This document shows, piece by piece, positions 7,518 through 63,126 of a DNA stretch of 64,000 nt (its first letter is position 1; each line of letters starts with the position of its first letter). The stretch covers positions 298,019 through 362,018 of the IMG/VR virus record IMGVR_UViG_3300042502_001233; one strand, given 5' to 3'. Below the pieces are notes generated by a model. That model had not been told where the DNA came from and made no database searches. It saw only the letters and a program-made list of their open reading frames with translations. The position numbers were made by a program, and so were the translations under genes.

Positions 7518-7574
7518 TTTACTTCTTTCTAAATAAATATCTAGAAATTATAAAAAGTACAAAAAAGTTTAAGG

Positions 7575-7648
7575 TGGAAGTAACGGGACTCGAACCCGTG
7601 TTCTCGCAACATCAGCCGCTTTATACTATCCTATTGTACTATACTCCC
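7575..7648 (-). ncRNA. tRNA-like RNA with Ala-type acceptor (G3:U70) and 4-nt anticodon loop
   Basis: GGGAGTA/TACTTCC-A acceptor, D and T arms intact; central hairpin GCGGC-TGAT-GTTGC. Confidence 0.6.
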
Positions 7649-9002: not shown

Positions 9003-9668
9003 CTATTTTTTTATTTCTACCACAATTGGTTTGTTTTGCACTTGGTAGTTGAAGTTAAGTATTGATGCGTTTACAAACACCCCACCATCTGGAAACTCAA
9101 ACTTACCGTATGCTTCGTGGATATGACCACACACAAATAGCTTTAGGTTGGTCATTTCAGCAGACTTCTCCAATAAATAAGGACAGCCAGTAGATACACC
9201 TCTAGTTGTCATATCCAAGAAACCTTTCATTGGACCATGTGTTATAAGCACATCGGTATCCAACGGTATCATATCCCAATGTTGACATATATCAGTACCC
9301 ATTCTATTAAACGCCCAATCATAAAACCATGGGGTGACTCCACTACCATGAAATTTTAACCCTTCAATTTCTACATTAGTATCATGTAAATAAATTATTG
9401 TTGGGTATTTTTCTTGTAACATTTCGTTGACAGCAAAAGTACTAACTTTTTCAAACCAAAAATCATGATTACCTGGAATAAAAATTTTGTATTTATAATT
9501 TAAAGCATTATACCAACTTAAGAAATCTTCAACCTCTCTTAGACTTCCTCTTCCAGATATATCACCAGCGTGTATTATCATGTCAATAGAACCATCTTTA
9601 TTATCTAACCAATCTGGCGGTATGCGGTGATGTATTGAATGGGTGTCACTTATACATGTAATAGTCAT
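9003..9668 (-). CDS. metallophosphoesterase (MPPED/239FB-like)
   Basis: ISDTH, IHAGD, GNHD, THGP, GHIHE. Confidence 0.92.
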   Translation of the reverse strand: MTITCISDTHSIHHRIPPDWLDNKDGSIDMIIHAGDISGRGSLREVEDFLSWYNALNYKYKIFIPGNHDFWFEKVSTFAVNEMLQEKYPTIIYLHDTNVEIEGLKFHGSGVTPWFYDWAFNRMGTDICQHWDMIPLDTDVLITHGPMKGFLDMTTRGVSTGCPYLLEKSAEMTNLKLFVCGHIHEAYGKFEFPDGGVFVNASILNFNYQVQNKPIVVEIKK

Positions 9669-12695: not shown

Positions 12696-14687
12696 TTAAA
12701 GATTAATTAACGACAAATTTATGTTCTTTTTCTCAACATCTACACTGGATACAATCACATGAACCATGTCCCCAAGTCTAATCTTGTGACCTGTGTTATA
12801 ACCTTTTACGCAATGATTGTTGGTATCAGCTTGATAAGTATCACCGTTGATGTCTGATAGTTTTATGAACCCATCACATTTGTTCTCTAGTATCTCTACA
12901 AACAAACCGTAATCAGTTACAGAACTCACAATACCTTTGAATACTTTGCCAATGTTTTCACTCATATAAACACATTGCATGTATTTGATTGAATCACGTT
13001 CTGCTTTCTGCGCCTTCTTCTCTCTTTCAGATAAATGTTGGCATCTGGTTTCAAGCTTCTCAATTTTAGGTAGCGTTGGTTTGTTCTCCAAGTACAACCC
13101 TAACAGTCTGTGTGTTATAACGTCTGGATAACGTCTAATCGGACTGGTGAAGTGGCTGTAGTCTTTAAAACCAAGACCATAGTGACCAATGTTTTTAGTT
13201 GTGTAGTTTGCTTTCTGCATTGTTCTCACAACCAAGTTGTTAATCATATCTTCCTCAGCAGTACCTCTAACATCCAACAACAACTGGTTAAGAGTTCTTG
13301 TGGTTTCCTCTGGTGTGTCAATACGAATCTCATAACCAAACTGTGAAATAAATTCCTTTAAGTTATTTAATTTATCATCGTTAGGTTTATCATGTGCTCT
13401 GTTTACATTAGGCAACTCTCGTTTGTTTATGTATTGAGCAACATGTCTGTTTGCCAACAACATAAATTCCTCAATCAACTTGTTTGAGTCTTTGGCTACC
13501 TTGAAGTGGATACCAATTGGCTTGTTGTTTTCATCCAACTTGAATTTAACCTCTTGTTTATCAAAGGATATTGAACCTTTCTTTGAACGAGTCTTACGCA
13601 TTCTCTGTGCTATCTTATTTAACAATCTAACTGCATCAAACATTTTCTTTACTTCCGTAGCGTATCTCATGCTACTGTCAATATTCATGTTTTTCATAAA
13701 TTCAAAATCAGATATGTCGGTTTCTCCTTTACCTTCTGATTCAATAATTATTTGTGCTTCTTCATATGTAAGTCTACAATCAGAGTTAATCACAGTTCTA
13801 CCGAACCATTCTTCAAGCACATGACCGTTTTGGTCAATCTTAAACACCGCTGAGAAACACAATTTGTCCTCGTTAGGTCTAAGACTACACAATCCGTTAG
13901 ACAAGTTCTCAGGAAGCATTGGAACACATCTGTCAACTAGATACACACTGGTACCTCTGGCAAACGCTTCTTTATCCAATTGTGTGTCTGGACGCAAATA
14001 GTGTGATACGTCAGCAATGTGAATACCAACAAACAACTCACCATCAACCCATTCAACACTCAACGCATCATCAAAATCTTTGGCATCCGCTGGGTCAATG
14101 GTGAACGTCAATACGTCACGCATATCTCTACGTTTGTCAATCTCTGATTGTGGTATGTCTATTGGGATTGCTCTAGCTTCTGCCAACACATCTTCGTCGA
14201 AGTCGTATGGTAAACCATATTCTTCAAGGATACTGTGTATCTCAGTTTCATGTTCACCAGCATCACCTAAAACTCTAAGGACTTTCCCGTTAGGGTTTTT
14301 AGCGTTGTCTCTCCATTCAGTTAGCTTCACAATAACCTTTTGTCCATCTGTAGCTCCACAGAGCTTGTCTGATGGAATATAAAAGTCAATTGGTAGTTTG
14401 TTACTATCTGGAATAAAGAACGCGAATTTTGGGCTTATTTGTATTGTACCAACAAACTCCGTTCTGAATCGTTCTACGATTTCAACTACATGTCCTTCCA
14501 TTGAGCGGCCAATACCTTCGACCACTTTAACTTTGACTTTATCCAAATGCAACGCTTGGTTAGTGTTGCTCTTGTGGATGTAAATGTCTTTTGGTAGGTT
14601 TGGGTCAGTCAAATACGCTGAGCCACTAGCATTCATGCTTAGTCTACCTTCTAATATATCATCAATTTTTATTTTTTCTTCTCTCAT
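12696..14687 (-). CDS. rnr: ribonuclease R
   Basis: TIDPADAKDFDDA, HIADVSHY, RGTSVY, IEEFMLLAN, HFTSPIRRYPD, C-terminal S1. Confidence 0.97.
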   Translation of the reverse strand: MREEKIKIDDILEGRLSMNASGSAYLTDPNLPKDIYIHKSNTNQALHLDKVKVKVVEGIGRSMEGHVVEIVERFRTEFVGTIQISPKFAFFIPDSNKLPIDFYIPSDKLCGATDGQKVIVKLTEWRDNAKNPNGKVLRVLGDAGEHETEIHSILEEYGLPYDFDEDVLAEARAIPIDIPQSEIDKRRDMRDVLTFTIDPADAKDFDDALSVEWVDGELFVGIHIADVSHYLRPDTQLDKEAFARGTSVYLVDRCVPMLPENLSNGLCSLRPNEDKLCFSAVFKIDQNGHVLEEWFGRTVINSDCRLTYEEAQIIIESEGKGETDISDFEFMKNMNIDSSMRYATEVKKMFDAVRLLNKIAQRMRKTRSKKGSISFDKQEVKFKLDENNKPIGIHFKVAKDSNKLIEEFMLLANRHVAQYINKRELPNVNRAHDKPNDDKLNNLKEFISQFGYEIRIDTPEETTRTLNQLLLDVRGTAEEDMINNLVVRTMQKANYTTKNIGHYGLGFKDYSHFTSPIRRYPDVITHRLLGLYLENKPTLPKIEKLETRCQHLSEREKKAQKAERDSIKYMQCVYMSENIGKVFKGIVSSVTDYGLFVEILENKCDGFIKLSDINGDTYQADTNNHCVKGYNTGHKIRLGDMVHVIVSSVDVEKKNINLSLINL

Positions 14688-29494: not shown

Positions 29495-31777
29495 TTATAT
29501 AAGCACTTCTAAATCAGATTTTTTTATTAAACCAAAACTAGGGTGATAAACTTTATCAAACCTAATATACGGTGTTTCTATTTTTCTAGCATTAACATAA
29601 ACACCTTCTTCGGATAAGTATTTTTTAGAATTAATCATATCATTATAATCAAATCTACCATCATTGTTATTACGCAATAATTCCCAAGTTTGTTTTACCT
29701 TTTTAAACGTGTTAGAGTTTTCATCAAATTCTTCACTAAAAGTTTTTCTTATTGTAACAGAAAAAGTGTCAGTAAAATTATTTGGGTCATCGTGATATTG
29801 TGCTATAACAAATACACTGTTACCATTAGACCTTAATTTGTTACCACCAGCTGTTATTGTTTTTGTTTTTGATTTAGAAAAATACATAACAGGATAGATT
29901 TTAGTTAAACAATCCAAACTCTTAGCCAAGGTTTCTCTTAACTCTCTAACCAATATTTTTTCATACATCGCTTGAAATTCATTATAGATAACATAAAATC
30001 TATCAATAGATAAATTTTCACCACTATATTGTTTTAAATGTGCAAACCAAGAATTAGATAAATTGTTAGTATACAAAATTTCTCTCATTTTGGTTTCACT
30101 TCTATTATCAAATAGCATAACATAAACCTCTGGGCTCAAATAATAACCCCATCTGTTACATCTACCAATACGTTGTAAAGTTGTTTCTGGTGATAACACT
30201 GATTCATATAATTTATTGAATGATATGTCTAAACTAGACTGTATTATAGGTGTACCCATAACATTTGGTTTAGTTAAACTTCTATCGGAAGTTTTACCAT
30301 AGTCTTCATATAATTTAGCAAAATTTTTCTCCCTATCTGATTTTACAAAATCAGAATGGAACAGAGAAGCACATGAAAATTTGTTTTTGTTTAACTGCGA
30401 TGTTTTTATCGCGTTCATAACTACCAAAGAAGATGAATTTGGTTCTACGATTGCTTCTCCATCTATCGTATTGAACAAAAATTCAACACTATGTGGTGCA
30501 TTGAAATGTCTGTGTTTTTCTGGTAAAATCAAAGTTTTAGCACCTATAGAATCCCATAACGCGCACATGTTTGTTGGTGTTGCTGATAGTAAAAGAGTGT
30601 TAGCTCTGGTGAAACGGTTTCTAGTTGTCATTATGTTTATAAAACTTGAAAACAAAGCAGTTTCTTTACCAATTAATTCATGAAATTCATCAAATATAAC
30701 ATCAGAGTTTATAATGGTGTATAACCTAGATGCTACGTTATTGTTGATACTAGGTGTTAGATAATTATCTATATTAGTTACTATTATATTTGAATCGAAC
30801 CCCTTTGAATTATGTGTACTTTTTTTAACTTCGCTAGAGTAAAACAACTCAACTGAAATATTATTATCCCCAAACAATTTTAACTCTTCGTTTATTGTTT
30901 TATATACAGATTGAGCAATTACGTTAGTTGGGCAAACCCAAATAACTCTTTTATTCCTTGTTATTGCAAACAACATCCCTAACAAAGTTTTACCGAAACC
31001 AGCTGGTGCGTTAATTTGTGTTGTTTTTTCTGTTGATTCAACAATTGAAAGTTGGTTAGTAAAACGTTCATTACCAAAAAATTTATGTTTTTTAATGTCG
31101 ATACCATATTCTACAGTATTGTAGTTTGAAATCAAATCTTTAATTTCTTCATCAGTTGCCGTTTCATATTTTGAGGCTAACCTATCAGCAGAAATCACAC
31201 AAGACCTAATTAAAAGATTTTCAGCATTTTTTTGATAACAATCATCACCAACCATATAAAACATTGGAGTATTTTTAGGGACGTAGTCTTTTTCCTCAAA
31301 ATAAATTCTATCGTTAGAAACGTTTTTCTTTATGATATCATTAGCAAAACCCATCATAATTTTAAACTCTTCTTCTGTAATATTTTTCTCAATATCCGTG
31401 TCTTTATATTTACCAAATTCATTACTAATACCGTGATGCCAATAAATAACGTTTAGAATTTTTTCTAATGTTTCTTTATTTATACCGTTTAAATATCTAC
31501 TTAAAAAAGCCCAACCTATTTCATTATGCCTAAACTTTTTGTCGGTAGGTAATTTTTCTTCAATTTGGTCCTCAGATAAACCTTTATTTAACTTTTTTTG
31601 AAAGAATTCAGTGCATTTACCGATATCGTGCAACAGTGATGAAACTTTTATTACTAATAACGTTTCGTCATTAATTTCTAAAATCGTTTGTCTCGCAATT
31701 TCTTCTGCAAACTTTGAAACCAAAATAGAGTGGTCTTCCAAACTTTGACCAGAACTTTTTGCTAAAATGATACTCAT
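29495..31777 (-). CDS. cas3: Cas3 HD nuclease-helicase (no Cas2 fusion)
   Basis: LAKS..SLEDH, LLHDIGK, RHNE, HHG, SADRLAS; APAGFGKT, FDEFH, SAT, SLDISF, QRIGRCNR. Confidence 0.96.
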   Translation of the reverse strand: MSIILAKSSGQSLEDHSILVSKFAEEIARQTILEINDETLLVIKVSSLLHDIGKCTEFFQKKLNKGLSEDQIEEKLPTDKKFRHNEIGWAFLSRYLNGINKETLEKILNVIYWHHGISNEFGKYKDTDIEKNITEEEFKIMMGFANDIIKKNVSNDRIYFEEKDYVPKNTPMFYMVGDDCYQKNAENLLIRSCVISADRLASKYETATDEEIKDLISNYNTVEYGIDIKKHKFFGNERFTNQLSIVESTEKTTQINAPAGFGKTLLGMLFAITRNKRVIWVCPTNVIAQSVYKTINEELKLFGDNNISVELFYSSEVKKSTHNSKGFDSNIIVTNIDNYLTPSINNNVASRLYTIINSDVIFDEFHELIGKETALFSSFINIMTTRNRFTRANTLLLSATPTNMCALWDSIGAKTLILPEKHRHFNAPHSVEFLFNTIDGEAIVEPNSSSLVVMNAIKTSQLNKNKFSCASLFHSDFVKSDREKNFAKLYEDYGKTSDRSLTKPNVMGTPIIQSSLDISFNKLYESVLSPETTLQRIGRCNRWGYYLSPEVYVMLFDNRSETKMREILYTNNLSNSWFAHLKQYSGENLSIDRFYVIYNEFQAMYEKILVRELRETLAKSLDCLTKIYPVMYFSKSKTKTITAGGNKLRSNGNSVFVIAQYHDDPNNFTDTFSVTIRKTFSEEFDENSNTFKKVKQTWELLRNNNDGRFDYNDMINSKKYLSEEGVYVNARKIETPYIRFDKVYHPSFGLIKKSDLEVLI

Positions 31778-54263: not shown

Positions 54264-55744
54264 TAATATGTAAATTTATGCCAAGTATCATAATTTTTAT
54301 CTAAAGCATCCATAGCCAGTTCAACTTCTTTTAAACATTCGTTGATACCACCACCAACTAGCACCACGTTGTTATAAGAACCCAAAAAGTCCATTAAGTC
54401 TGGAATATTAATACAATCCTCAGAATCTTCCATCAATTCTCTGATGTTTTTAGAACCGTATTGTTTAACAAATGCTTTCCAGAATTTTTTATCCAATTCT
54501 CTAGAATCGTTTATATCGTTATCTCGCATAAACTTAACCAGATTTACCAATTCTTCATCATCCCCACCACGGTCCATACAGTTTCTAAAGAACGCGTAAC
54601 CTTTGTCGTATAATCTAGCACCATAAGCTATATCTTCATCCAACCCGTTTTCTACCAACCAATCTCTATATTCATGTTCTGAAACCATACCCATAGTGTC
54701 TTCACCATTGTATAAAAACGTTAAATCAGATAATTCGTGTATATGCGTGTTGATGTATTCGAATAATTCAGTTTGTATACCACCCATCCATGAAGCGTAT
54801 TCTGGTTGAACGTCAACAACTATCAAATGTCTACCGACAGCATTTTCCGTTATCAAAGGCGTATCTTCATTGATTTCACCACTAGACAATTTTTTGTTGT
54901 GTTCAATAACTCTATCTAATATTTGATGATAAGCTTGAGATAACCTTCTCATAAGTCTTTTTTTGAAGTTTGGTGTCATTTTCTCATAGGCACCAAAGTT
55001 ATTCTCAAATTGAGTTTTAATACTACTAAAAGGAACTGGTGTTAAAAAACCATTAGGTTTGTTTTTATCCATTCCGTTGTTAGTAATATAGAACTGAATT
55101 TCTTTTATAGCTTGGGTAAACCTAGCGTTAATTTCGTATTCAAGTTTATCGTAGTCATCGCGTTGTTTTTGTGTGATAGGTGTACCTTTTGGTAAGTTAC
55201 CGTATTCTTTGTCGTAGTCATAACCTCTTTTGCTGGCCATGAACATACCTTGACTTCTCCAAGAGTCATAAGCATGTTGTAATTCGTGTAAAATTGTTGA
55301 TAGAACTTTTCTATCATACAAACGACCATGTACTTGGTTGCACATCTGGTTGTATATTTCTTGGTTGATTTGTTTACCTGATTTTAATATAGGGAAAACT
55401 ATATCTTCTATGGATTTTTGTAGTTTAGACAATTCATACCTAACAATGATATCACCACTAATTTCATTATGTGCGACAAAATCACCCAAAGAACTCAAAC
55501 TACCACTATATCTAAAACCTAAATCATATTCGTTGACAAAATCACTTAAATTTAAGTATTTGTTTCTGTTTATTTTGCTAAACATATCTTGAATTCTATC
55601 AAGGATATTTAATGTAGATTTTTTATCAATCGTTTCACTTACAAAATACCTAATACTAGTCATAAATACACTATCAGCCAAATTTTGCAATTCGACGTGT
55701 GTATTCATATCTTCTCTAAGTAGATGTTTGATTAACCTTTTCAT
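54263..55744 (-). CDS. two-domain protein: HExxH metallopeptidase-like plus cysteine-hydrolase (isochorismatase/nicotinamidase)-like
   Basis: ILHELQHAYD...EINAR; LIVVDVQ...DKGY...LVGGGINECL. Confidence 0.65.
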   Translation of the reverse strand: MKRLIKHLLREDMNTHVELQNLADSVFMTSIRYFVSETIDKKSTLNILDRIQDMFSKINRNKYLNLSDFVNEYDLGFRYSGSLSSLGDFVAHNEISGDIIVRYELSKLQKSIEDIVFPILKSGKQINQEIYNQMCNQVHGRLYDRKVLSTILHELQHAYDSWRSQGMFMASKRGYDYDKEYGNLPKGTPITQKQRDDYDKLEYEINARFTQAIKEIQFYITNNGMDKNKPNGFLTPVPFSSIKTQFENNFGAYEKMTPNFKKRLMRRLSQAYHQILDRVIEHNKKLSSGEINEDTPLITENAVGRHLIVVDVQPEYASWMGGIQTELFEYINTHIHELSDLTFLYNGEDTMGMVSEHEYRDWLVENGLDEDIAYGARLYDKGYAFFRNCMDRGGDDEELVNLVKFMRDNDINDSRELDKKFWKAFVKQYGSKNIRELMEDSEDCINIPDLMDFLGSYNNVVLVGGGINECLKEVELAMDALDKNYDTWHKFTY

Positions 55745-55750
55745 ATAAGT

Positions 55751-55864
55751 TTATGCGTTCTTTAATCTGTTGATGATTTCTTCGTTTTGTTTAACCAAAT
55801 TTCTTCTTTTAACCACATTACCTCTGTTAGGTTTAGCCGCTGGTCTTTTTGTTGCTCTCGCCAT
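55751..55864 (-). CDS. small basic protein (37 aa, MARATKRPAAK...)
   Basis: Read manually; directly behind a TATTTAT motif. Confidence 0.55.
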   Translation of the reverse strand: MARATKRPAAKPNRGNVVKRRNLVKQNEEIINRLKNA

Positions 55865-55931
55865 AATATTTAATTTTATTATAAATATCCAGTTAAAAAT
55901 AAAAAAACCTATACATTGTATAGGTTTTCAT

Positions 55932-56189
55932 AACAAAGTGAGCTTAGCCGCGATTCTGTTTTAATCCATAATTTATCTTTGCCACTACCCGTCTATCGTC
56001 ACAATCCAAGTTCCCTTGCTAAGACTGTATGTGTTGCATCCCGTGTTGCGGTAGTAGTAACGAATGTTCAGATGTTAACTAAAGTATTTAAACTTAGGTG
56101 CCAGCCATCTGCTGCTTACTAATTCTTCTACCTCTTGGAGAGATGTCGCGAACTTCCTCTGTTGCCAGCTATGGATTCTCTGCTTTGTT
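55932..56189 (-). ncRNA. rnpB: compact RNase P RNA
   Basis: CR-I GAGGAAGTTCGCGA pairs with CR-V ACAGAATCGCGGCTA (P4); CR-IV AGATAAAT; P1 ACAAAG/CTTTGT, P2 ATCCATA/TATGGAT, P3 CTG-GCAA-CAG; terminator hairpin near 55905-55928. Confidence 0.85.
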
Positions 56190-56192
56190 TTG

Positions 56193-56308
56193 TGGGGCGG
56201 CTGGAATTGCACCAACGTTTTTCAAATTTACAGTTTGGTTTTGTGAATTAAATTGCTGCAAACATTCTTCATAAACAGAATGTGTTGTTCTAACATTTTA
56301 ACACCCCC
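56193..56308 (-). ncRNA. degenerate tRNA-Tyr(GTA)-like RNA with inserted CAGCAA stem
   Basis: CAAA-CTGTAAA-TTTG anticodon arm; insert ACATTCT/AGAATGT-TTGCAGCAA between D region and anticodon arm. Confidence 0.55.
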
Positions 56309-56333
56309 ATATTAGTCACAAAAAAGTGACCAG

Positions 56334-56407
56334 TGCAGTAGACGAGACTCGAACTCGCAACCCTTGACTTGGCAAGCCAATACTCTAACCAATTGAGCTA
56401 CTACTGC
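56334..56407 (-). tRNA. tRNA-Gly(GCC)
   Basis: Full cloverleaf; TTGGC-TTGCCAA-GTCAA. Confidence 0.93.
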
Positions 56408-56546
56408 ATTTATGCCTCTCTCTGCATCCGTCACACCCCATTTGTATTCTGTTAATCTCCTAAGACTGTTTGCTACGCTTGACATAAAGTCTCAGCCCTT
56501 AAAAGGATTTTCCTAACGGTAAATCGGTGTCAAAAACCAGTATTTC

Positions 56547-57359
56547 TTAATACCACCACCATTTAGCTTGGTTTCTGTTTTGGTAATGAAACTCTTGGAA
56601 GTCTTGACTCCAAGCGCTAGCACTGGTCCAATCAGTCCAATCACTATCGGTGATAAACTCTCTTTCAGTCATTTCGTTACCTTGTTCTTTGTGCCACTCA
56701 TGAGAGTCGTTAATGAACATGGTGTTGAGGTTCTTTCTAAGAGCCATTTTGTCTTTGCGTCTGTTTCTTTTTGAGACACTTTTTAAGAACCAAGAATAAC
56801 CACCCTCATTGTAAGGATTCATAATAGTTCTAAGATGCCAAAGTTGGTCTCTTACAAATCTTAATTCTCGTTCTAACTCACCATCAACCACTTTACGGTG
56901 AGTGATGTAACTGTTTCTGATTTTCATAACAAAATAAAAATCTGGAACGTAAGACGCTGAGTAATATTTAGCTATAGTACCGTTCCAACGTGGTTTATCA
57001 TCTAAATGATTGTGTCGGAAATACTTTGCCACTTGTGGCGGCAATTTTAAATATTGTTCCTCAGACATTAATTTTATCTTAGGTTTTCTATCAATCACAT
57101 AACCTCTCTTTTTTTCGTAGAACACAGTCGTTGGAGACCATGTTAACGTAGAGCAATTATCAATGATGTATTGGAATACCCAAGCATCTTGTCTTCTAGA
57201 AATGTCTTCTCTTAATTCCAAATAAGCTTCATAGCCTTTGTGTATTGGTTTTTCAAGTTCAACATAACCTAAATTTTTGATGGCCATTTCAAGCTCATCT
57301 TCTTTTTCCATTAACGCTAAATAGCGTTTGTAATCTTTGTGTTTTGTGTTTTTACTCAT
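56547..57359 (-). CDS. hypothetical protein within tRNA cluster
   Basis: 270-aa ORF. Confidence 0.75.
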   Translation of the reverse strand: MSKNTKHKDYKRYLALMEKEDELEMAIKNLGYVELEKPIHKGYEAYLELREDISRRQDAWVFQYIIDNCSTLTWSPTTVFYEKKRGYVIDRKPKIKLMSEEQYLKLPPQVAKYFRHNHLDDKPRWNGTIAKYYSASYVPDFYFVMKIRNSYITHRKVVDGELERELRFVRDQLWHLRTIMNPYNEGGYSWFLKSVSKRNRRKDKMALRKNLNTMFINDSHEWHKEQGNEMTEREFITDSDWTDWTSASAWSQDFQEFHYQNRNQAKWWWY

Positions 57360-57488
57360 TTGTTCTCGGTATAGGGATTTGACCCTTAGTACCTCGAACC
57401 TTTTAAAATTGCAATCATAGTTTTCCTTTTTTATTAATTAGTATTTTATTAGAGTACAAATATACGAACTCTTTTTATAAATAGCAAG

Positions 57489-57758
57489 TTATTTGTTATA
57501 ATTTTTTAAATTATGTTCTACACACATAACCGCTTCTGCGATAGCCACTTTGGCATCTTCAACGTCTTTTGCCCAAGTAACCACACCCAAATTAGGTATC
57601 GTTACCTTGATGAAACCGTCTGGTCTTCTTTCAATGACGCTATTTCTGGTATCTTCTACCAACTTCTCAATTCTTTCTCTGTGCTTTCTAGAGCGTTCTG
57701 CTAACCTAGCTTTACTTTCCTCTGAAAGCTTTCCACCTAAGTATACAAAACTTTCCAT
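57489..57758 (-). CDS. hypothetical protein with HicB-like C-terminal segment
   Basis: VTIPNLGVVTWAKDVEDAKVAIAEAV. Confidence 0.55.
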   Translation of the reverse strand: MESFVYLGGKLSEESKARLAERSRKHRERIEKLVEDTRNSVIERRPDGFIKVTIPNLGVVTWAKDVEDAKVAIAEAVMCVEHNLKNYNK

Positions 57759-57773
57759 AATTAATATTTTTAG

Positions 57774-57853
57774 AGCCGATGGAGGGACTCGAACCCCCGA
57801 TGTTTGTATACCGCTTTACAAAAGCGGTGCTGTCGCCACTGAGCCACATCGGC
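57774..57853 (-). tRNA. tRNA-Thr(TGT), enlarged variable loop
   Basis: GCCGATG acceptor; CCGCT-TTTGTAA-AGCGG. Confidence 0.85.
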
Positions 57854-57956
57854 ATTTAATAGCTATCAAATCGTGGATATCATTGATTTGAAATAAACTT
57901 ATTATCCTTTCTGCAAGGAATGACAACCATCTCTGAAGTTTACTTATCACTATTTG

Positions 57957-58030
57957 AGCCTCAGACAGGAGTCGAACCTGCGACCTGCTGATTACAAATC
58001 AGCTGCTCTGGCCATCTGAGCTACTGAGGC
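57957..58030 (-). tRNA. tRNA-Thr(TGT)
   Basis: GCTGA-TTTGTAA-TCAGC. Confidence 0.95.
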
Positions 58031-58038
58031 ATATATTG

Positions 58039-58122
58039 TGGGCAAGGAGGGATTCGAACCCCCGAAGTCGAATGACAGATGTTTTACAGACACCGCGCTT
58101 TGAGCCGCTTGCATACTTACCC
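58039..58122 (-). tRNA. tRNA-Tyr(GTA)
   Basis: GGTGT-CTGTAAA-ACATC, long variable arm. Confidence 0.93.
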
Positions 58123-58186
58123 ATAACGGCCTATAACGTTTGCCACTCGATGGGTATTTCTTTCTCGCAGTACCATTTCTGCCGTG

Positions 58187-58265
58187 TGGGCCTAGAGGGA
58201 ATCGAACCTACAAGAATTAACACGATTTTACAGACCGCTGAGCTCACCACCTGCTCAATAGACCC
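58187..58265 (-). tRNA. tRNA-Tyr(GTA), imperfect T stem
   Basis: GCGGT-CTGTAAA-ATCGT. Confidence 0.75.
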
Positions 58266-58271
58266 AATTTC

Positions 58272-58330
58272 AGGGTGGTGTATCGGTTTCAAATTAAAAG
58301 TTTGATGATAAAGATTGCTGAAACCACCCT
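58272..58330 (-). ncRNA. mini RNA: CAGCAA stem carrying an isolated Lys(TTT) anticodon stem-loop
   Basis: AGGGTGG-TTTCAGCAA...TCAAA-CTTTTAA-TTTGA...CCACCCT. Confidence 0.6.
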
Positions 58331-58334
58331 TTAG

Positions 58335-58406
58335 TTGGAATGTAGGGACTCGAACCCTAAAAATGACGGTCAAAGTGTCATATGTTGCCAATTACATCAC
58401 ATTCCA
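58335..58406 (-). tRNA. tRNA-Gln(TTG)
   Basis: TGGAATG acceptor; loop CTTTGAC. Confidence 0.85.
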
Positions 58407-58417
58407 GTATAATATTG

Positions 58418-58488
58418 TTGTCCTACAAGGATTCGAACCTTGAATGACTGGCTCAAAACCAGTAGTGTTACCGTTACACTATAGGACA
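58418..58488 (-). tRNA. tRNA-Gln(TTG)
   Basis: ACTGG-TTTTGAG-CCAGT. Confidence 0.92.
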
Positions 58489-58661
58489 ATAACTCTAATT
58501 CTATGCTCGTCCTCACGCAACTCTATAAATTAGTAACAGTCTTATCTACAACGTCAGTAGGACTTAAAAGGAACCACTCATTTATATCCTTTCTATCAAC
58601 GGGGAATCACTCCCATGCTTGGCGTAATCCATACATCACTGCATGTCTATCCTACTTATTG

Positions 58662-58735
58662 AGCGATTATTCGGATTCGAACCGAAACCAGAGACTTGGA
58701 AGGCCCCTGTGCTAGCCGTTAAACACCATAATCGC
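58662..58735 (-). tRNA. tRNA-Gly(TCC)
   Basis: GGGGC-CTTCCAA-GTCTC. Confidence 0.92.
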
Positions 58736-58786
58736 AATTTTCTAATTTATTTATTTCATCTAAAACATAGTTTATATATTATTTTG

Positions 58787-58859
58787 TGCTCCCGAAGGGC
58801 CTCGAACCCTTTACCCCTCCGTTAAAAGCGGAGTGCCCGTCCACATGAGCTTCGAAAGC
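58787..58859 (-). tRNA. tRNA-Lys(TTT)
   Basis: CTCCG-CTTTTAA-CGGAG. Confidence 0.85.
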
Positions 58860-58883
58860 AATTATCCATTTCTGGATTTTTAG

Positions 58884-58957
58884 TACCCCCGAAGAGACTC
58901 GAACTCTTGACTCCCCGCTTAAAAGGCGGGTGCTCTAACCAACTGAGCTACGAGGGT
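58884..58957 (-). tRNA. tRNA-Lys(TTT)
   Basis: CCCGC-CTTTTAA-GCGGG. Confidence 0.95.
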
Positions 58958-59045
58958 ATATTACACTCATAACCAATTGGTCTGAGTGACTTAACGTTTA
59001 CGCTTTATGTTCTTTATATTTTTCATTTGTTTTATTGTTGTTTTT

Positions 59046-59121
59046 GGCCTCCCAGAAGGATTCGAACCTTCCATCCATAAGCCCCCAATGGGCTGCGCTT
59101 TTCCTACTAAGCTATGGGACG
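59046..59121 (-). tRNA. atypical tRNA/pseudo-tRNA, anticodon ambiguous (TGG or TTG)
   Basis: D and T arms intact; AGCCC-ATTGG-GGGCT anticodon arm is non-canonical. Confidence 0.5.
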
Positions 59122-59127
59122 CATATT

Positions 59128-59475
59128 TTATTTTTGTCTTTCTTTTAATTCTTCAACCGTTAAATTATAACGATGTAATATTCTATGATGATTCGCACAA
59201 AGGCAAACACATTTTTCAATTTCATTTATAATTTTAACATTAGACCATTTATGGTTACATACAGCGGCTATTGTAAATTCTTTATCATCTTTGTCTATGT
59301 GATGAAAATCTATACAAGCTTTATCCGCTTCCCCACAAACTAAACAAGGTTTTTTTAAGGTTTCTACTAAATCTCTAATTTCTTGTCTTCTTTGTCTTTG
59401 TTTTAAATTATGAATTTCTTTATTGTTTTTAAATTCATTTTGTTTCCATTCTTTTTGTTTTTCTGTCTGTGCCAT
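59128..59475 (-). CDS. small HNH endonuclease
   Basis: CLVCG...DFHH...KCVCLCANHHR. Confidence 0.88.
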   Translation of the reverse strand: MAQTEKQKEWKQNEFKNNKEIHNLKQRQRRQEIRDLVETLKKPCLVCGEADKACIDFHHIDKDDKEFTIAAVCNHKWSNVKIINEIEKCVCLCANHHRILHRYNLTVEELKERQK

Positions 59476-59598
59476 ATTTTCTTTTTATTATAAATATGTT
59501 CAAGTCATACAAAAAGACTAGAATTTATCAAATTATTAGCCATTATTTTCATAATGTTTCCAGTAACCGCTGCGTGGAAGCTATTTGATATGGTTACT

Positions 59599-59687
59599 TC
59601 TAAGTGATGGGACTCGAACCCACATGATGCTTTTTACACAATTCTCGTTTCCAAAACGAGTCGGCTTCCAATTGCCTTCACACCTAG
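59599..59687 (-). tRNA. tRNA-Pro(TGG) with long variable arm
   Basis: CTAGGTG/CACTTAG acceptor; CTCGT-TTTGGAA-ACGAG; T arm GTGGG-TTCGAGT-CCCAT. Confidence 0.7.
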
Positions 59688-62731: not shown

Positions 62732-62846
62732 TACAAGAGATTGGATTCGAACCAATGCCACTCCCACGTCTCGCATCCAATCTAAAAGGGAATCGAACCC
62801 TACGCACGGTTACAGGGGGAGTGCTCTTCCGCTAAGCTACTCTTAT
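62732..62846 (-). ncRNA. tRNA-like RNA with about 45-nt insert, including a second T arm, in the anticodon loop
   Basis: ATAAGAG/CTCTTGT acceptor, D arm, ACTCCC/GGGAGT stem, insert AGGG-TTCGATT-CCCT. Confidence 0.6.
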
Positions 62847-62998
62847 ATTTGAGGCTGAGGCCTCTGTGTTGTAGTGACTACAAAGTCTATCCACTCTTCT
62901 ACCTACATCTCTACTACCACTCCGATATAGGGTGGGATGGTTCGGTCTCCTTATTTAGCATTCCTTTCTCAAGGGAACAACACAATATTTTAGACAAC

Positions 62999-63126
62999 AA
63001 GATTACTTTTTTTCTTTTACGTGCTCTAACCAACTGAGCTACCGACCCACTAGGAGCCGAGTGGGACTCGAACCCACGACCACGAGCTTAACAGGCTATA
63101 GATAGTTTTGTTGCTGAAATAATCTT
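62999..63126 (-). ncRNA. circularly permuted tRNA-Asn(GTT)-like RNA with CAGCAA stem (Y-RNA-like)
   Basis: AAGATTA-TTTCAGCAA, AGC-CTGTTAA-GCT, T arm, TCGGCTC-CTAGT-GGGTCGG, GCTC-AGTTGGTTA-GAGC, TAATCTT. Confidence 0.8.

Follow-up and report, generated by a model that had tools for sequence, protein, structure and literature searches.

What is the RNA encoded at the end of the tRNA cluster of this phage, and what might it do? An earlier note had proposed that 258 nt at this position are a phage-encoded miniature RNase P RNA, with the universal CR-I, CR-IV and CR-V motifs, a compensated P4, and reduced peripheral and specificity-domain elements, co-oriented with the tRNAs and followed by a terminator. 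The window analysed here is a 64,000-nucleotide stretch, the last 64 kb of a 362,018-bp IMG/VR virus record that CheckV rates 100% complete. The sequence occurs in lake-water metagenomes, and the record is a phage, since it has a terminase large-subunit ATPase domain. It carries 45 tRNA genes, all on the minus strand and mostly without encoded CCA, and a CCA-adding-type nucleotidyltransferase. We find that the described features are present on the minus strand of 55932-56189 and that the identification is supported, although catalysis is inferred.

Structure of the RNA at 55932-56189

At curated Rfam thresholds, only tRNAs are found in the window. A permissive search gives a global alignment (1-288 of 288) to archaeal RNase P (RF00373) on exactly 55932-56189, with a score of 22.6 bits against a gathering score of 84, E=2e-4 locally and E=0.017 over the whole window. 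RNase P is the only non-tRNA Rfam family that aligns here. The bacterial type A (RF00010, gathering score 100) and archaeal type T (RF02357) models give nothing at E<=1 on the genome. Taken alone, this result is suggestive and not proof, and the hit to the archaeal model reflects the shared universal core, not archaeal descent. The case rests on comparison with relatives. The helices of the window's RNA were verified base by base, and the features of the locus are as follows.

55932-56189, minus strand: complete miniature RNase P RNA gene, 258 nt, from the P1 5' end to the P1 3' end
56178-56189, minus strand: P1 5' strand (AACAAAG..GAG), pairing with 55932-55942
55932-55942, minus strand: P1 3' strand (CTC.CTTTGTT); P1 has 7+3 bp
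56169-56177, minus strand: P2 5' strand, pairing with 55963-55971 (9 bp)
55963-55971, minus strand: P2 3' strand, overlapping the end of CR-IV
56159-56168, minus strand: P3 hairpin (CTG-GCAA-CAG), 3 bp with a GCAA loop
56145-56159, minus strand: CR-I and the P4 5' strand (GAGGAAGTTCGCGAC), including the bulged U at 56151
55945-55959, minus strand: CR-V and the P4 3' strand (ACAGAATCGCGGCTA)
56141-56145, minus strand: P5 5' strand (CATCT), pairing with 56037-56041 (GGATG)
56134-56139, minus strand: P6 pseudoknot 5' strand (TCCAAG), pairing with the L17 loop at 56005-56010 (CTTGGA), 6 bp
56050-56132, minus strand: vestigial specificity domain, a 5-bp P7-like helix (GGTAG/CTACC) enclosing a short internal loop and one extended hairpin
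56034-56037, minus strand: J5/15 GCAA
55982-56033, minus strand: P15-P16-P17 module, with the L15 GGU at 55987-55989
55970-55978, minus strand: CR-IV (AGATAAATT)
55903-55929, minus strand: intrinsic terminator hairpin (12-bp stem plus T run), starting 2 nt after the P1 3' end
56193-56308, minus strand: atypical tRNA-like element with an acceptor-like 3' end (..CCGCCCCA)
56333-56407, minus strand: tRNA-Gly(GCC), the nearest canonical tRNA upstream, with no encoded CCA
57773-59687, minus strand: co-oriented array of 11 tRNA genes upstream of the ribozyme

P4 forms 8 of 8 pairs (A-U, G-C, U.G, bulged U, C-G, G-C, C-G, G-C, A-U). The near-universal third A of CR-I (GGAAAG) is G here, although the change is compensated in P4. 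The P6 pseudoknot and the P15-P17 module were not in the earlier note. CR-II and CR-III, the specificity-domain elements that in type A enzymes recognise the tRNA T-loop, were not found, and so the efficiency and specificity of the RNA are uncertain.

Relatives and covariation

A scan of viral contigs for CR-I and CR-V with the window's unusual P4 bases found nine loci, and a scan with the CR-V 15-mer, after removal of hits to an unrelated coding gene, raised the set to 29 loci, 25 of them unique. Because these were selected on P4, a third scan was performed that specified only the L15, CR-IV and ACAGAA blocks. It returned about 30 further members with 15 different CR-I/CR-V combinations, each of which keeps 8 of 8 P4 pairs and the bulged U. 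In total, 49 distinct loci were analysed, with lengths of 193-361 nt and a median of about 226 nt.

RNAalifold on a plain MAFFT alignment recovered P2, P3, P5, P15 and P16, with compensatory changes at 18 of 21 pairs. A covariance model, R1, was then built and aligns members well, scoring 148.8 bits at 55930-56190 in the window. The partners of P2 and P4, which cross, were swapped in R1, and pairs were therefore counted with explicit pseudoknot brackets; since the alignments were fitted to the wrong partners, support for the correct ones cannot be a fitting artefact. In an alignment of 30 diverse compact members that excludes the window (A3), 89.6% of cells are paired, against 64% for shuffled partners and 32-44% for slid partners. 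Double-sided changes are seen in 49 of 57 pairs, and the covariation score is 0.647, against 0.18 for shuffled and 0.09-0.15 for slid partners. P2 is 97% paired, with double-sided changes in 5 of 7 pairs, P3 is 98.9% paired, P4 is 99.6% paired with 7 of 8 pairs covarying, and P5 is 99% paired with 3 of 4 pairs covarying. The P6 pseudoknot is 82.9% paired and 5 of 5 pairs covary, while P15, P16 and P17 are 97%, 96.5% and 82% paired, with covariation. The two helices of the specificity-domain remnant, S1 and S2, are 89% and 88% paired, also with covariation. P1 differs in sequence in nearly every member while staying complementary. The set that includes the window gives the same picture.

An nhmmer profile built from A3, which contains neither the window nor its near relative L002, finds the window's RNA as the only hit in the 362-kb genome, at 104.6 bits and E=3.4e-31, nearly end to end (56185-55932, E=6e-32). 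Furthermore, one relative, L034, shares the family-specific P4 (GTTCGCGA/TCGCGGC) and lies among tRNAs on a 176.8-kb viral contig rated 100% complete. L034 is a full-length hit to Rfam bacterial class A RNase P at 178.2 bits; it has P7-P12 and P18 and lacks P13/P14. It thus provides a bridge to a bona fide type A RNase P RNA. Five of the miniature RNAs give global sub-threshold hits of 26-41 bits to the archaeal model, and two more score 40-42 bits to the type A model, with E about 1e-11 per genome. No other member, including eight of 259-361 nt, reaches a curated threshold. The earlier note had taken the absence of any covariance-model hit and of cleavage activity as grounds for rejection; there is no hit at curated thresholds for the window's RNA, but there is the global sub-threshold hit.

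By position, the 5-bp S1 helix of the miniature RNAs is P7, and everything distal to it has collapsed to one hairpin. The interior between the P5 strands is 40-99 nt in the family and about 100 nt in the window, where it does not align to the specificity domain of any Rfam model; the corresponding interior in E. coli is probably in the region of 170-190 nt. In the window, the hairpin carries an extension that a related strain lacks, since a transcript contig from that strain replaces 45 nt of the distal hairpin with 5 nt.

The nucleotides expected to be functional are retained. GAGGAA of CR-I is present in 30 of 30 members, in a set that includes members found without specifying it. GCAA of J5/15 was never part of a scan pattern, and it is invariant in a first alignment and present in 29-30 of 30 members of A3. 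GGT of L15 is invariant in the set selected only on CR-I and CR-V. CR-IV (family consensus AGAnAAATG) and ACAGAA are likewise conserved in the subset that was not selected for that motif. By analogy with type A enzymes, these positions would bind catalytic metal ions, the residue 5' of the scissile bond (the J5/15 adenosine), and the tRNA 3' CCA (the L15 GGU).

Genomic context

Across the 49 loci, all 476 tRNA genes in the flanks examined are on the strand of the RNA and none is opposite. A tRNA lies within 3 kb of 36 of 49 members, and 23 of 49 have five or more. Fifteen of 49 are abutted within 12 nt by a co-oriented tRNA. In L005, for example, tRNA-Asn ends at 9287, the RNA spans 9285-9542, and tRNA-Val starts at 9543; L110, L092, L151, L039, L008 and L117 are alike. 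We infer from this that the 3' end of the RNA often coincides with an RNase P cleavage site and its 5' end with a tRNA 3' end. The window's RNA is single copy and co-oriented with all of the window's tRNA genes. Its upstream neighbour is the atypical tRNA-like element of roughly 115 nt, which ends 3 nt before P1 and probably defines the 5' end of the ribozyme. This element gives a weak tRNA hit of 20.8 bits and has a predicted acceptor-like stem, and it is about 100% conserved with L002 while its flanks diverge. In other members, a canonical tRNA occupies this position. The downstream boundary in the window is the terminator.

No RnpA (PF00825) is encoded in this genome or in 16 other carrier records, nine of which are at least 90% complete and four of which have terminal repeats, in a search whose positive control worked. 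A search with flanking proteins gave L002, which has the RNA, but also L003 and L004, which encode a relative of the neighbouring 493-aa protein and have no RNA within 6 kb. That protein is therefore not an obligate partner.

A scan of 185,579 species' genomes for the CR-V/CR-IV block gave five MAG contigs. Four match the family model, and all four are tRNA-array contigs of 2-203 kb, typical of phage DNA binned into MAGs; the fifth is not a member. The three larger MAGs also have their own canonical rnpB elsewhere, at 166-311 bits, and thus the miniature RNA is an extra, phage-type copy.

Evidence for expression is weak. Parts of the region occur in six freshwater metatranscriptomes, and when four of these were compared with 55000-57800, the neighbouring ORF 56547-57359 was covered in all four. 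Only one 182-nt contig, from a related strain in one run, covers the 5' 160 nt of the RNA, and DNA carry-over cannot be excluded.

Inferred function and related RNAs

What is the function of this RNA? The region encodes a phage version of the RNA subunit of RNase P, descended from the bacterial type A enzyme, in which the whole catalytic domain is kept and the specificity domain is reduced to a P7-like helix and one hairpin. In the mechanism that we consider likely, the RNA is transcribed as part of the phage's tRNA operon, its 5' end is set by 3' processing of the preceding tRNA or tRNA-like element, and its 3' end is set by the terminator in this window, or in many relatives by RNase P cleavage at the 5' end of the next tRNA. 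The mature RNA most likely cleaves 5' leaders from the phage's 45 pre-tRNAs, probably with the host's RnpA protein, because neither this phage nor the 16 other carriers encode one. The earlier note's proposal that the phage supplies its own ribozyme for its tRNAs fits the context, but catalysis, substrates, protein partner and end formation are inferred. The isolated catalytic domain of bacterial RNase P RNA appears to retain cleavage activity in vitro, and archaeal type T RNAs that lack the specificity domain are apparently functional. However, every host already has RNase P, and the selective benefit is not obvious. We think it somewhat more likely than not that these RNAs are a widespread and so far unrecognised class of phage-encoded, bacterial-type ribozymes, carried in tRNA operons from 160-kb T4-like phages up to the 735-kb huge phage, released from the polycistronic transcript by the tRNA-processing cuts themselves, including their own activity at the next tRNA, and working without a phage-encoded protein, which would give the phage its own tRNA-maturation capacity.

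It is possible, but unlikely, that the RNA is a non-catalytic mimic that keeps the fold in order to sequester host RnpA or pre-tRNAs, tilting tRNA maturation or host physiology in the phage's favour, as was proposed for the camelpox RNase P-like RNA (PMC3001073). Any protein partner must be taken from the host, the protein-binding region (P2-P3, CR-IV, CR-V) is conserved, and there is this viral precedent for an inactive RNase P-like RNA. However, residues needed for chemistry and substrate docking rather than protein binding are also conserved, namely the bulged U in P4, the J5/15 adenosines and the L15 GGU, and strict co-orientation and butt-joining with tRNAs fit a processing enzyme better than an inhibitor.

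An equally doubtful alternative is a catalytic RNase P that, having lost T-loop recognition, acts mainly on non-canonical substrates, such as atypical tRNA-like RNAs, tmRNA-like or Y RNA-like elements, or host RNAs. The loss of the specificity domain is in keeping with this, and the window holds several atypical tRNA-like elements, one of them directly upstream of the ribozyme and highly conserved, as well as a YrlA-like sub-threshold hit. Most family members, however, sit among ordinary canonical tRNAs and abut them, and the CCA-binding GGU is kept.

It is very unlikely that the RNA is only a structured spacer or a decaying captured host rnpB with no function in trans. Phage tRNA regions are mosaic and carry homing endonucleases; an HNH ORF lies in the window's array, and a GIY-YIG ORF splits the copy in another family locus, L106. 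But about 50 divergent copies preserve every helix through compensatory changes and keep the catalytic-core nucleotides, a pattern that indicates purifying selection on the fold, and MAGs that carry a copy also have a separate, canonical rnpB. A chance resemblance in AT-rich intergenic DNA, which the low Rfam score might suggest, is refuted by the leave-out profile, the covariation, the compensated P4 variants and L034.

The RNA matches bacterial type A RNase P RNA in the order and topology of P1-P6 and P15-P17, with P2 crossing P4, and in the P6 pseudoknot. It differs in its length (193-361 nt in the family, 258 nt here, rather than 330-400 nt), in the replacement of P8-P14 with CR-II and CR-III by a single hairpin, in the usual absence of P18, in its unusual P4 (GUUCGCGA/UCGCGGC), and in being phage-encoded within tRNA arrays with no cognate rnpA. 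The type T RNA of Thermoproteaceae/Pyrobaculum, a natural RNase P RNA of about 200 nt, appears also to have lost nearly the whole specificity domain while keeping the catalytic domain, but it is of archaeal type, seems to work with archaeal proteins, and appears to lack the bacterial P15-P17/GGU and P6 arrangement. As its model gives no hit, the similarity is limited to the loss of the specificity domain, and the reduction is convergent, not homologous. The diverged RNase P RNAs of CPR bacteria (PMC8172020) are bacterial-type RNAs that lack P12-P14 and P18 and also needed thresholds below the Rfam noise cut-off to be found. They are, however, the cell's only RNase P RNA, many lack the UGG/GGU motif or P15-P17, and they still keep more of the specificity domain, whereas the phage family keeps P15-P17 and GGU and loses more of it. 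Engineered catalytic-domain-only RNAs suggest that a type A or type B catalytic domain without most of the specificity domain can still cleave pre-tRNA, and the Mycoplasma fermentans RNA (276 nt) suggests that bacterial P RNAs can be about 260-280 nt; these are laboratory constructs, or a cellular RNA that keeps a specificity domain, while the phage family is a natural lineage under selection, reaching 193 nt. The camelpox RNA is the only viral precedent that we found. It comes from a eukaryotic virus, derives from nuclear H1/MRP-type RNA, is reported to lack pre-tRNA processing activity in vitro, and is not linked to tRNA genes.

RNase P RNA is one of the few universal ribozymes and has been treated as a strictly cellular or organellar gene. 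If active, this family would be the first RNase P ribozyme known from bacteriophages, would add a core tRNA-maturation enzyme to the translation-related genes that large phages carry, and would be a natural experiment in how little of a bacterial RNase P RNA is needed, with sizes down to about 193 nt, no T-loop-recognition module, and dozens of sequence variants. We found no description of a phage RNase P RNA in the literature searched, which is incomplete, and we regard novelty as probable and not certain. The DLP6 genome paper, the 2020 huge-phage paper and a 2026 jumbo-phage review do not mention RNase P, and the CPR paper reports only tRNAs and a tmRNA in its megaphages.

Current annotation pipelines miss these genes. 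A blastn search of GenBank phages with the window's region gave only tRNA matches; queries with other members found three records, but queries with L034 and L110 found none. Family members occur, unannotated, in the 735-kb and 635-kb uncultured huge-phage records, at 146 and 109 bits. A member also occurs, unannotated, in the cultured Stenotrophomonas phage vB_SmaS-DLP_6 (DLP6) at KU682439.2:105771-106021, scoring 131.5 bits. The DLP6 copy has P4 with 8 of 8 pairs and a 7-bp P6, and it ends 4 nt before tRNA-Arg(CCG).

A split family member and members on other contigs

One member of the family, at the locus L106 (the same sequence is in the locus L127), is split by an open reading frame. The arrangement on L106 is as follows.

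L106:12867-13787, minus strand, the split member as a whole
13522-13787, minus strand, P1 through P15
12867-12986, minus strand, CR-IV, CR-V, and the P1 3′ strand

Between the two parts, exactly at the P18 position, we found a 206-aa GIY-YIG endonuclease ORF (PF22945, E = 1.4e-9). This is either a homing-endonuclease-bearing intron in an RNase P RNA gene or a free-standing endonuclease gene that is tolerated in a variable slot. An HNH endonuclease ORF was also found inside the tRNA array of the window, at 59128-59475 (minus strand).

The cultured Stenotrophomonas phage DLP6, a T4-like phage of 168 kb with S. maltophilia D1571 as its host, carries an unannotated 251-nt family member inside its 30-tRNA region, at KU682439.2:105771-106021 (the locus L191:2306-2556). 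This member ends 4 nt upstream of tRNA-Arg(CCG). The phage is a ready experimental system. A 150-kb viral contig that carries a mini RNase P RNA also carries a tmRNA (97.4 bits) about 1.2 kb away (locus L147:1261-1644, minus strand). In a cellular genome, an Actinomycetes MAG (G005, contig C2) has two RNaseP_bact_a hits 3 kb apart, L185 and L189, at 258919-259323 and 262265-262659, with scores of 278.6 and 83.2 bits, respectively. It is possible that this is a duplicated or degenerate second rnpB.

tRNA-like and Y RNA-like elements of the phage

The phage also contains an amber-suppressor-type tRNA and a number of elements that resemble tRNAs or other small RNAs.

Window 56193-56308, minus strand, an atypical tRNA-like element of roughly 115 nt
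Window 62991-63114, minus strand, a sub-threshold Y RNA-like hit
Window 62732-62846, minus strand, a 115-nt tRNA-model hit
Window 7572-7648, minus strand, an odd tRNA-like gene
G000:C1:44350-44423 (the phage genome, outside the window), minus strand, an amber-suppressor-type tRNA (anticodon CTA)

The atypical element at 56193-56308 has an acceptor-like stem, GGGGGTG/CGCCCC, a T-arm-like GTTGG-TGCAATT-CCAGC, and an anticodon-loop-like CTGTAAA. It is not called by ARAGORN, and the Rfam tRNA model gives 20.8 bits. It is almost 100% identical in L002, a locus carrying another family member, although the sequence around it has diverged. The Y RNA-like hit (YrlA, RF02553) has a score of 41.2 bits, E = 1.1e-5, below the gathering score of 69, and it lies beside the 115-nt tRNA-model hit. 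The two may form a phage Y RNA-like/tRNA-like module. The odd tRNA-like gene at 7572-7648 cannot be assigned by ARAGORN and also gives a weak tmRNA-model hit of 28.7 bits.

Proteins encoded by the phage

In addition to the endonuclease ORF in the tRNA array, the phage encodes the following proteins.

G000:C1:40295-40675 (outside the window), minus strand, the phage's own CCA-adding-type nucleotidyltransferase (PF01743, 123 bits)
Window 12696-14687, minus strand, a 663-aa RNase R/II-family 3′-5′ exoribonuclease
Window 29495-31777, minus strand, a 760-aa Cas3-like protein
Window 56547-57359, minus strand, a 270-aa ORF between tRNA-Gly and the main tRNA array

The exoribonuclease has an RNB domain (366 bits), together with cold-shock and S1 domains, and is another RNA-processing enzyme encoded by the phage. 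The Cas3-like protein has an HD nuclease domain, a DEAD/DEAH helicase domain, and a Cas3 C-terminal domain. The 270-aa ORF has no Pfam or PHROG match; it is covered by metatranscriptome contigs in all four RNA runs examined.
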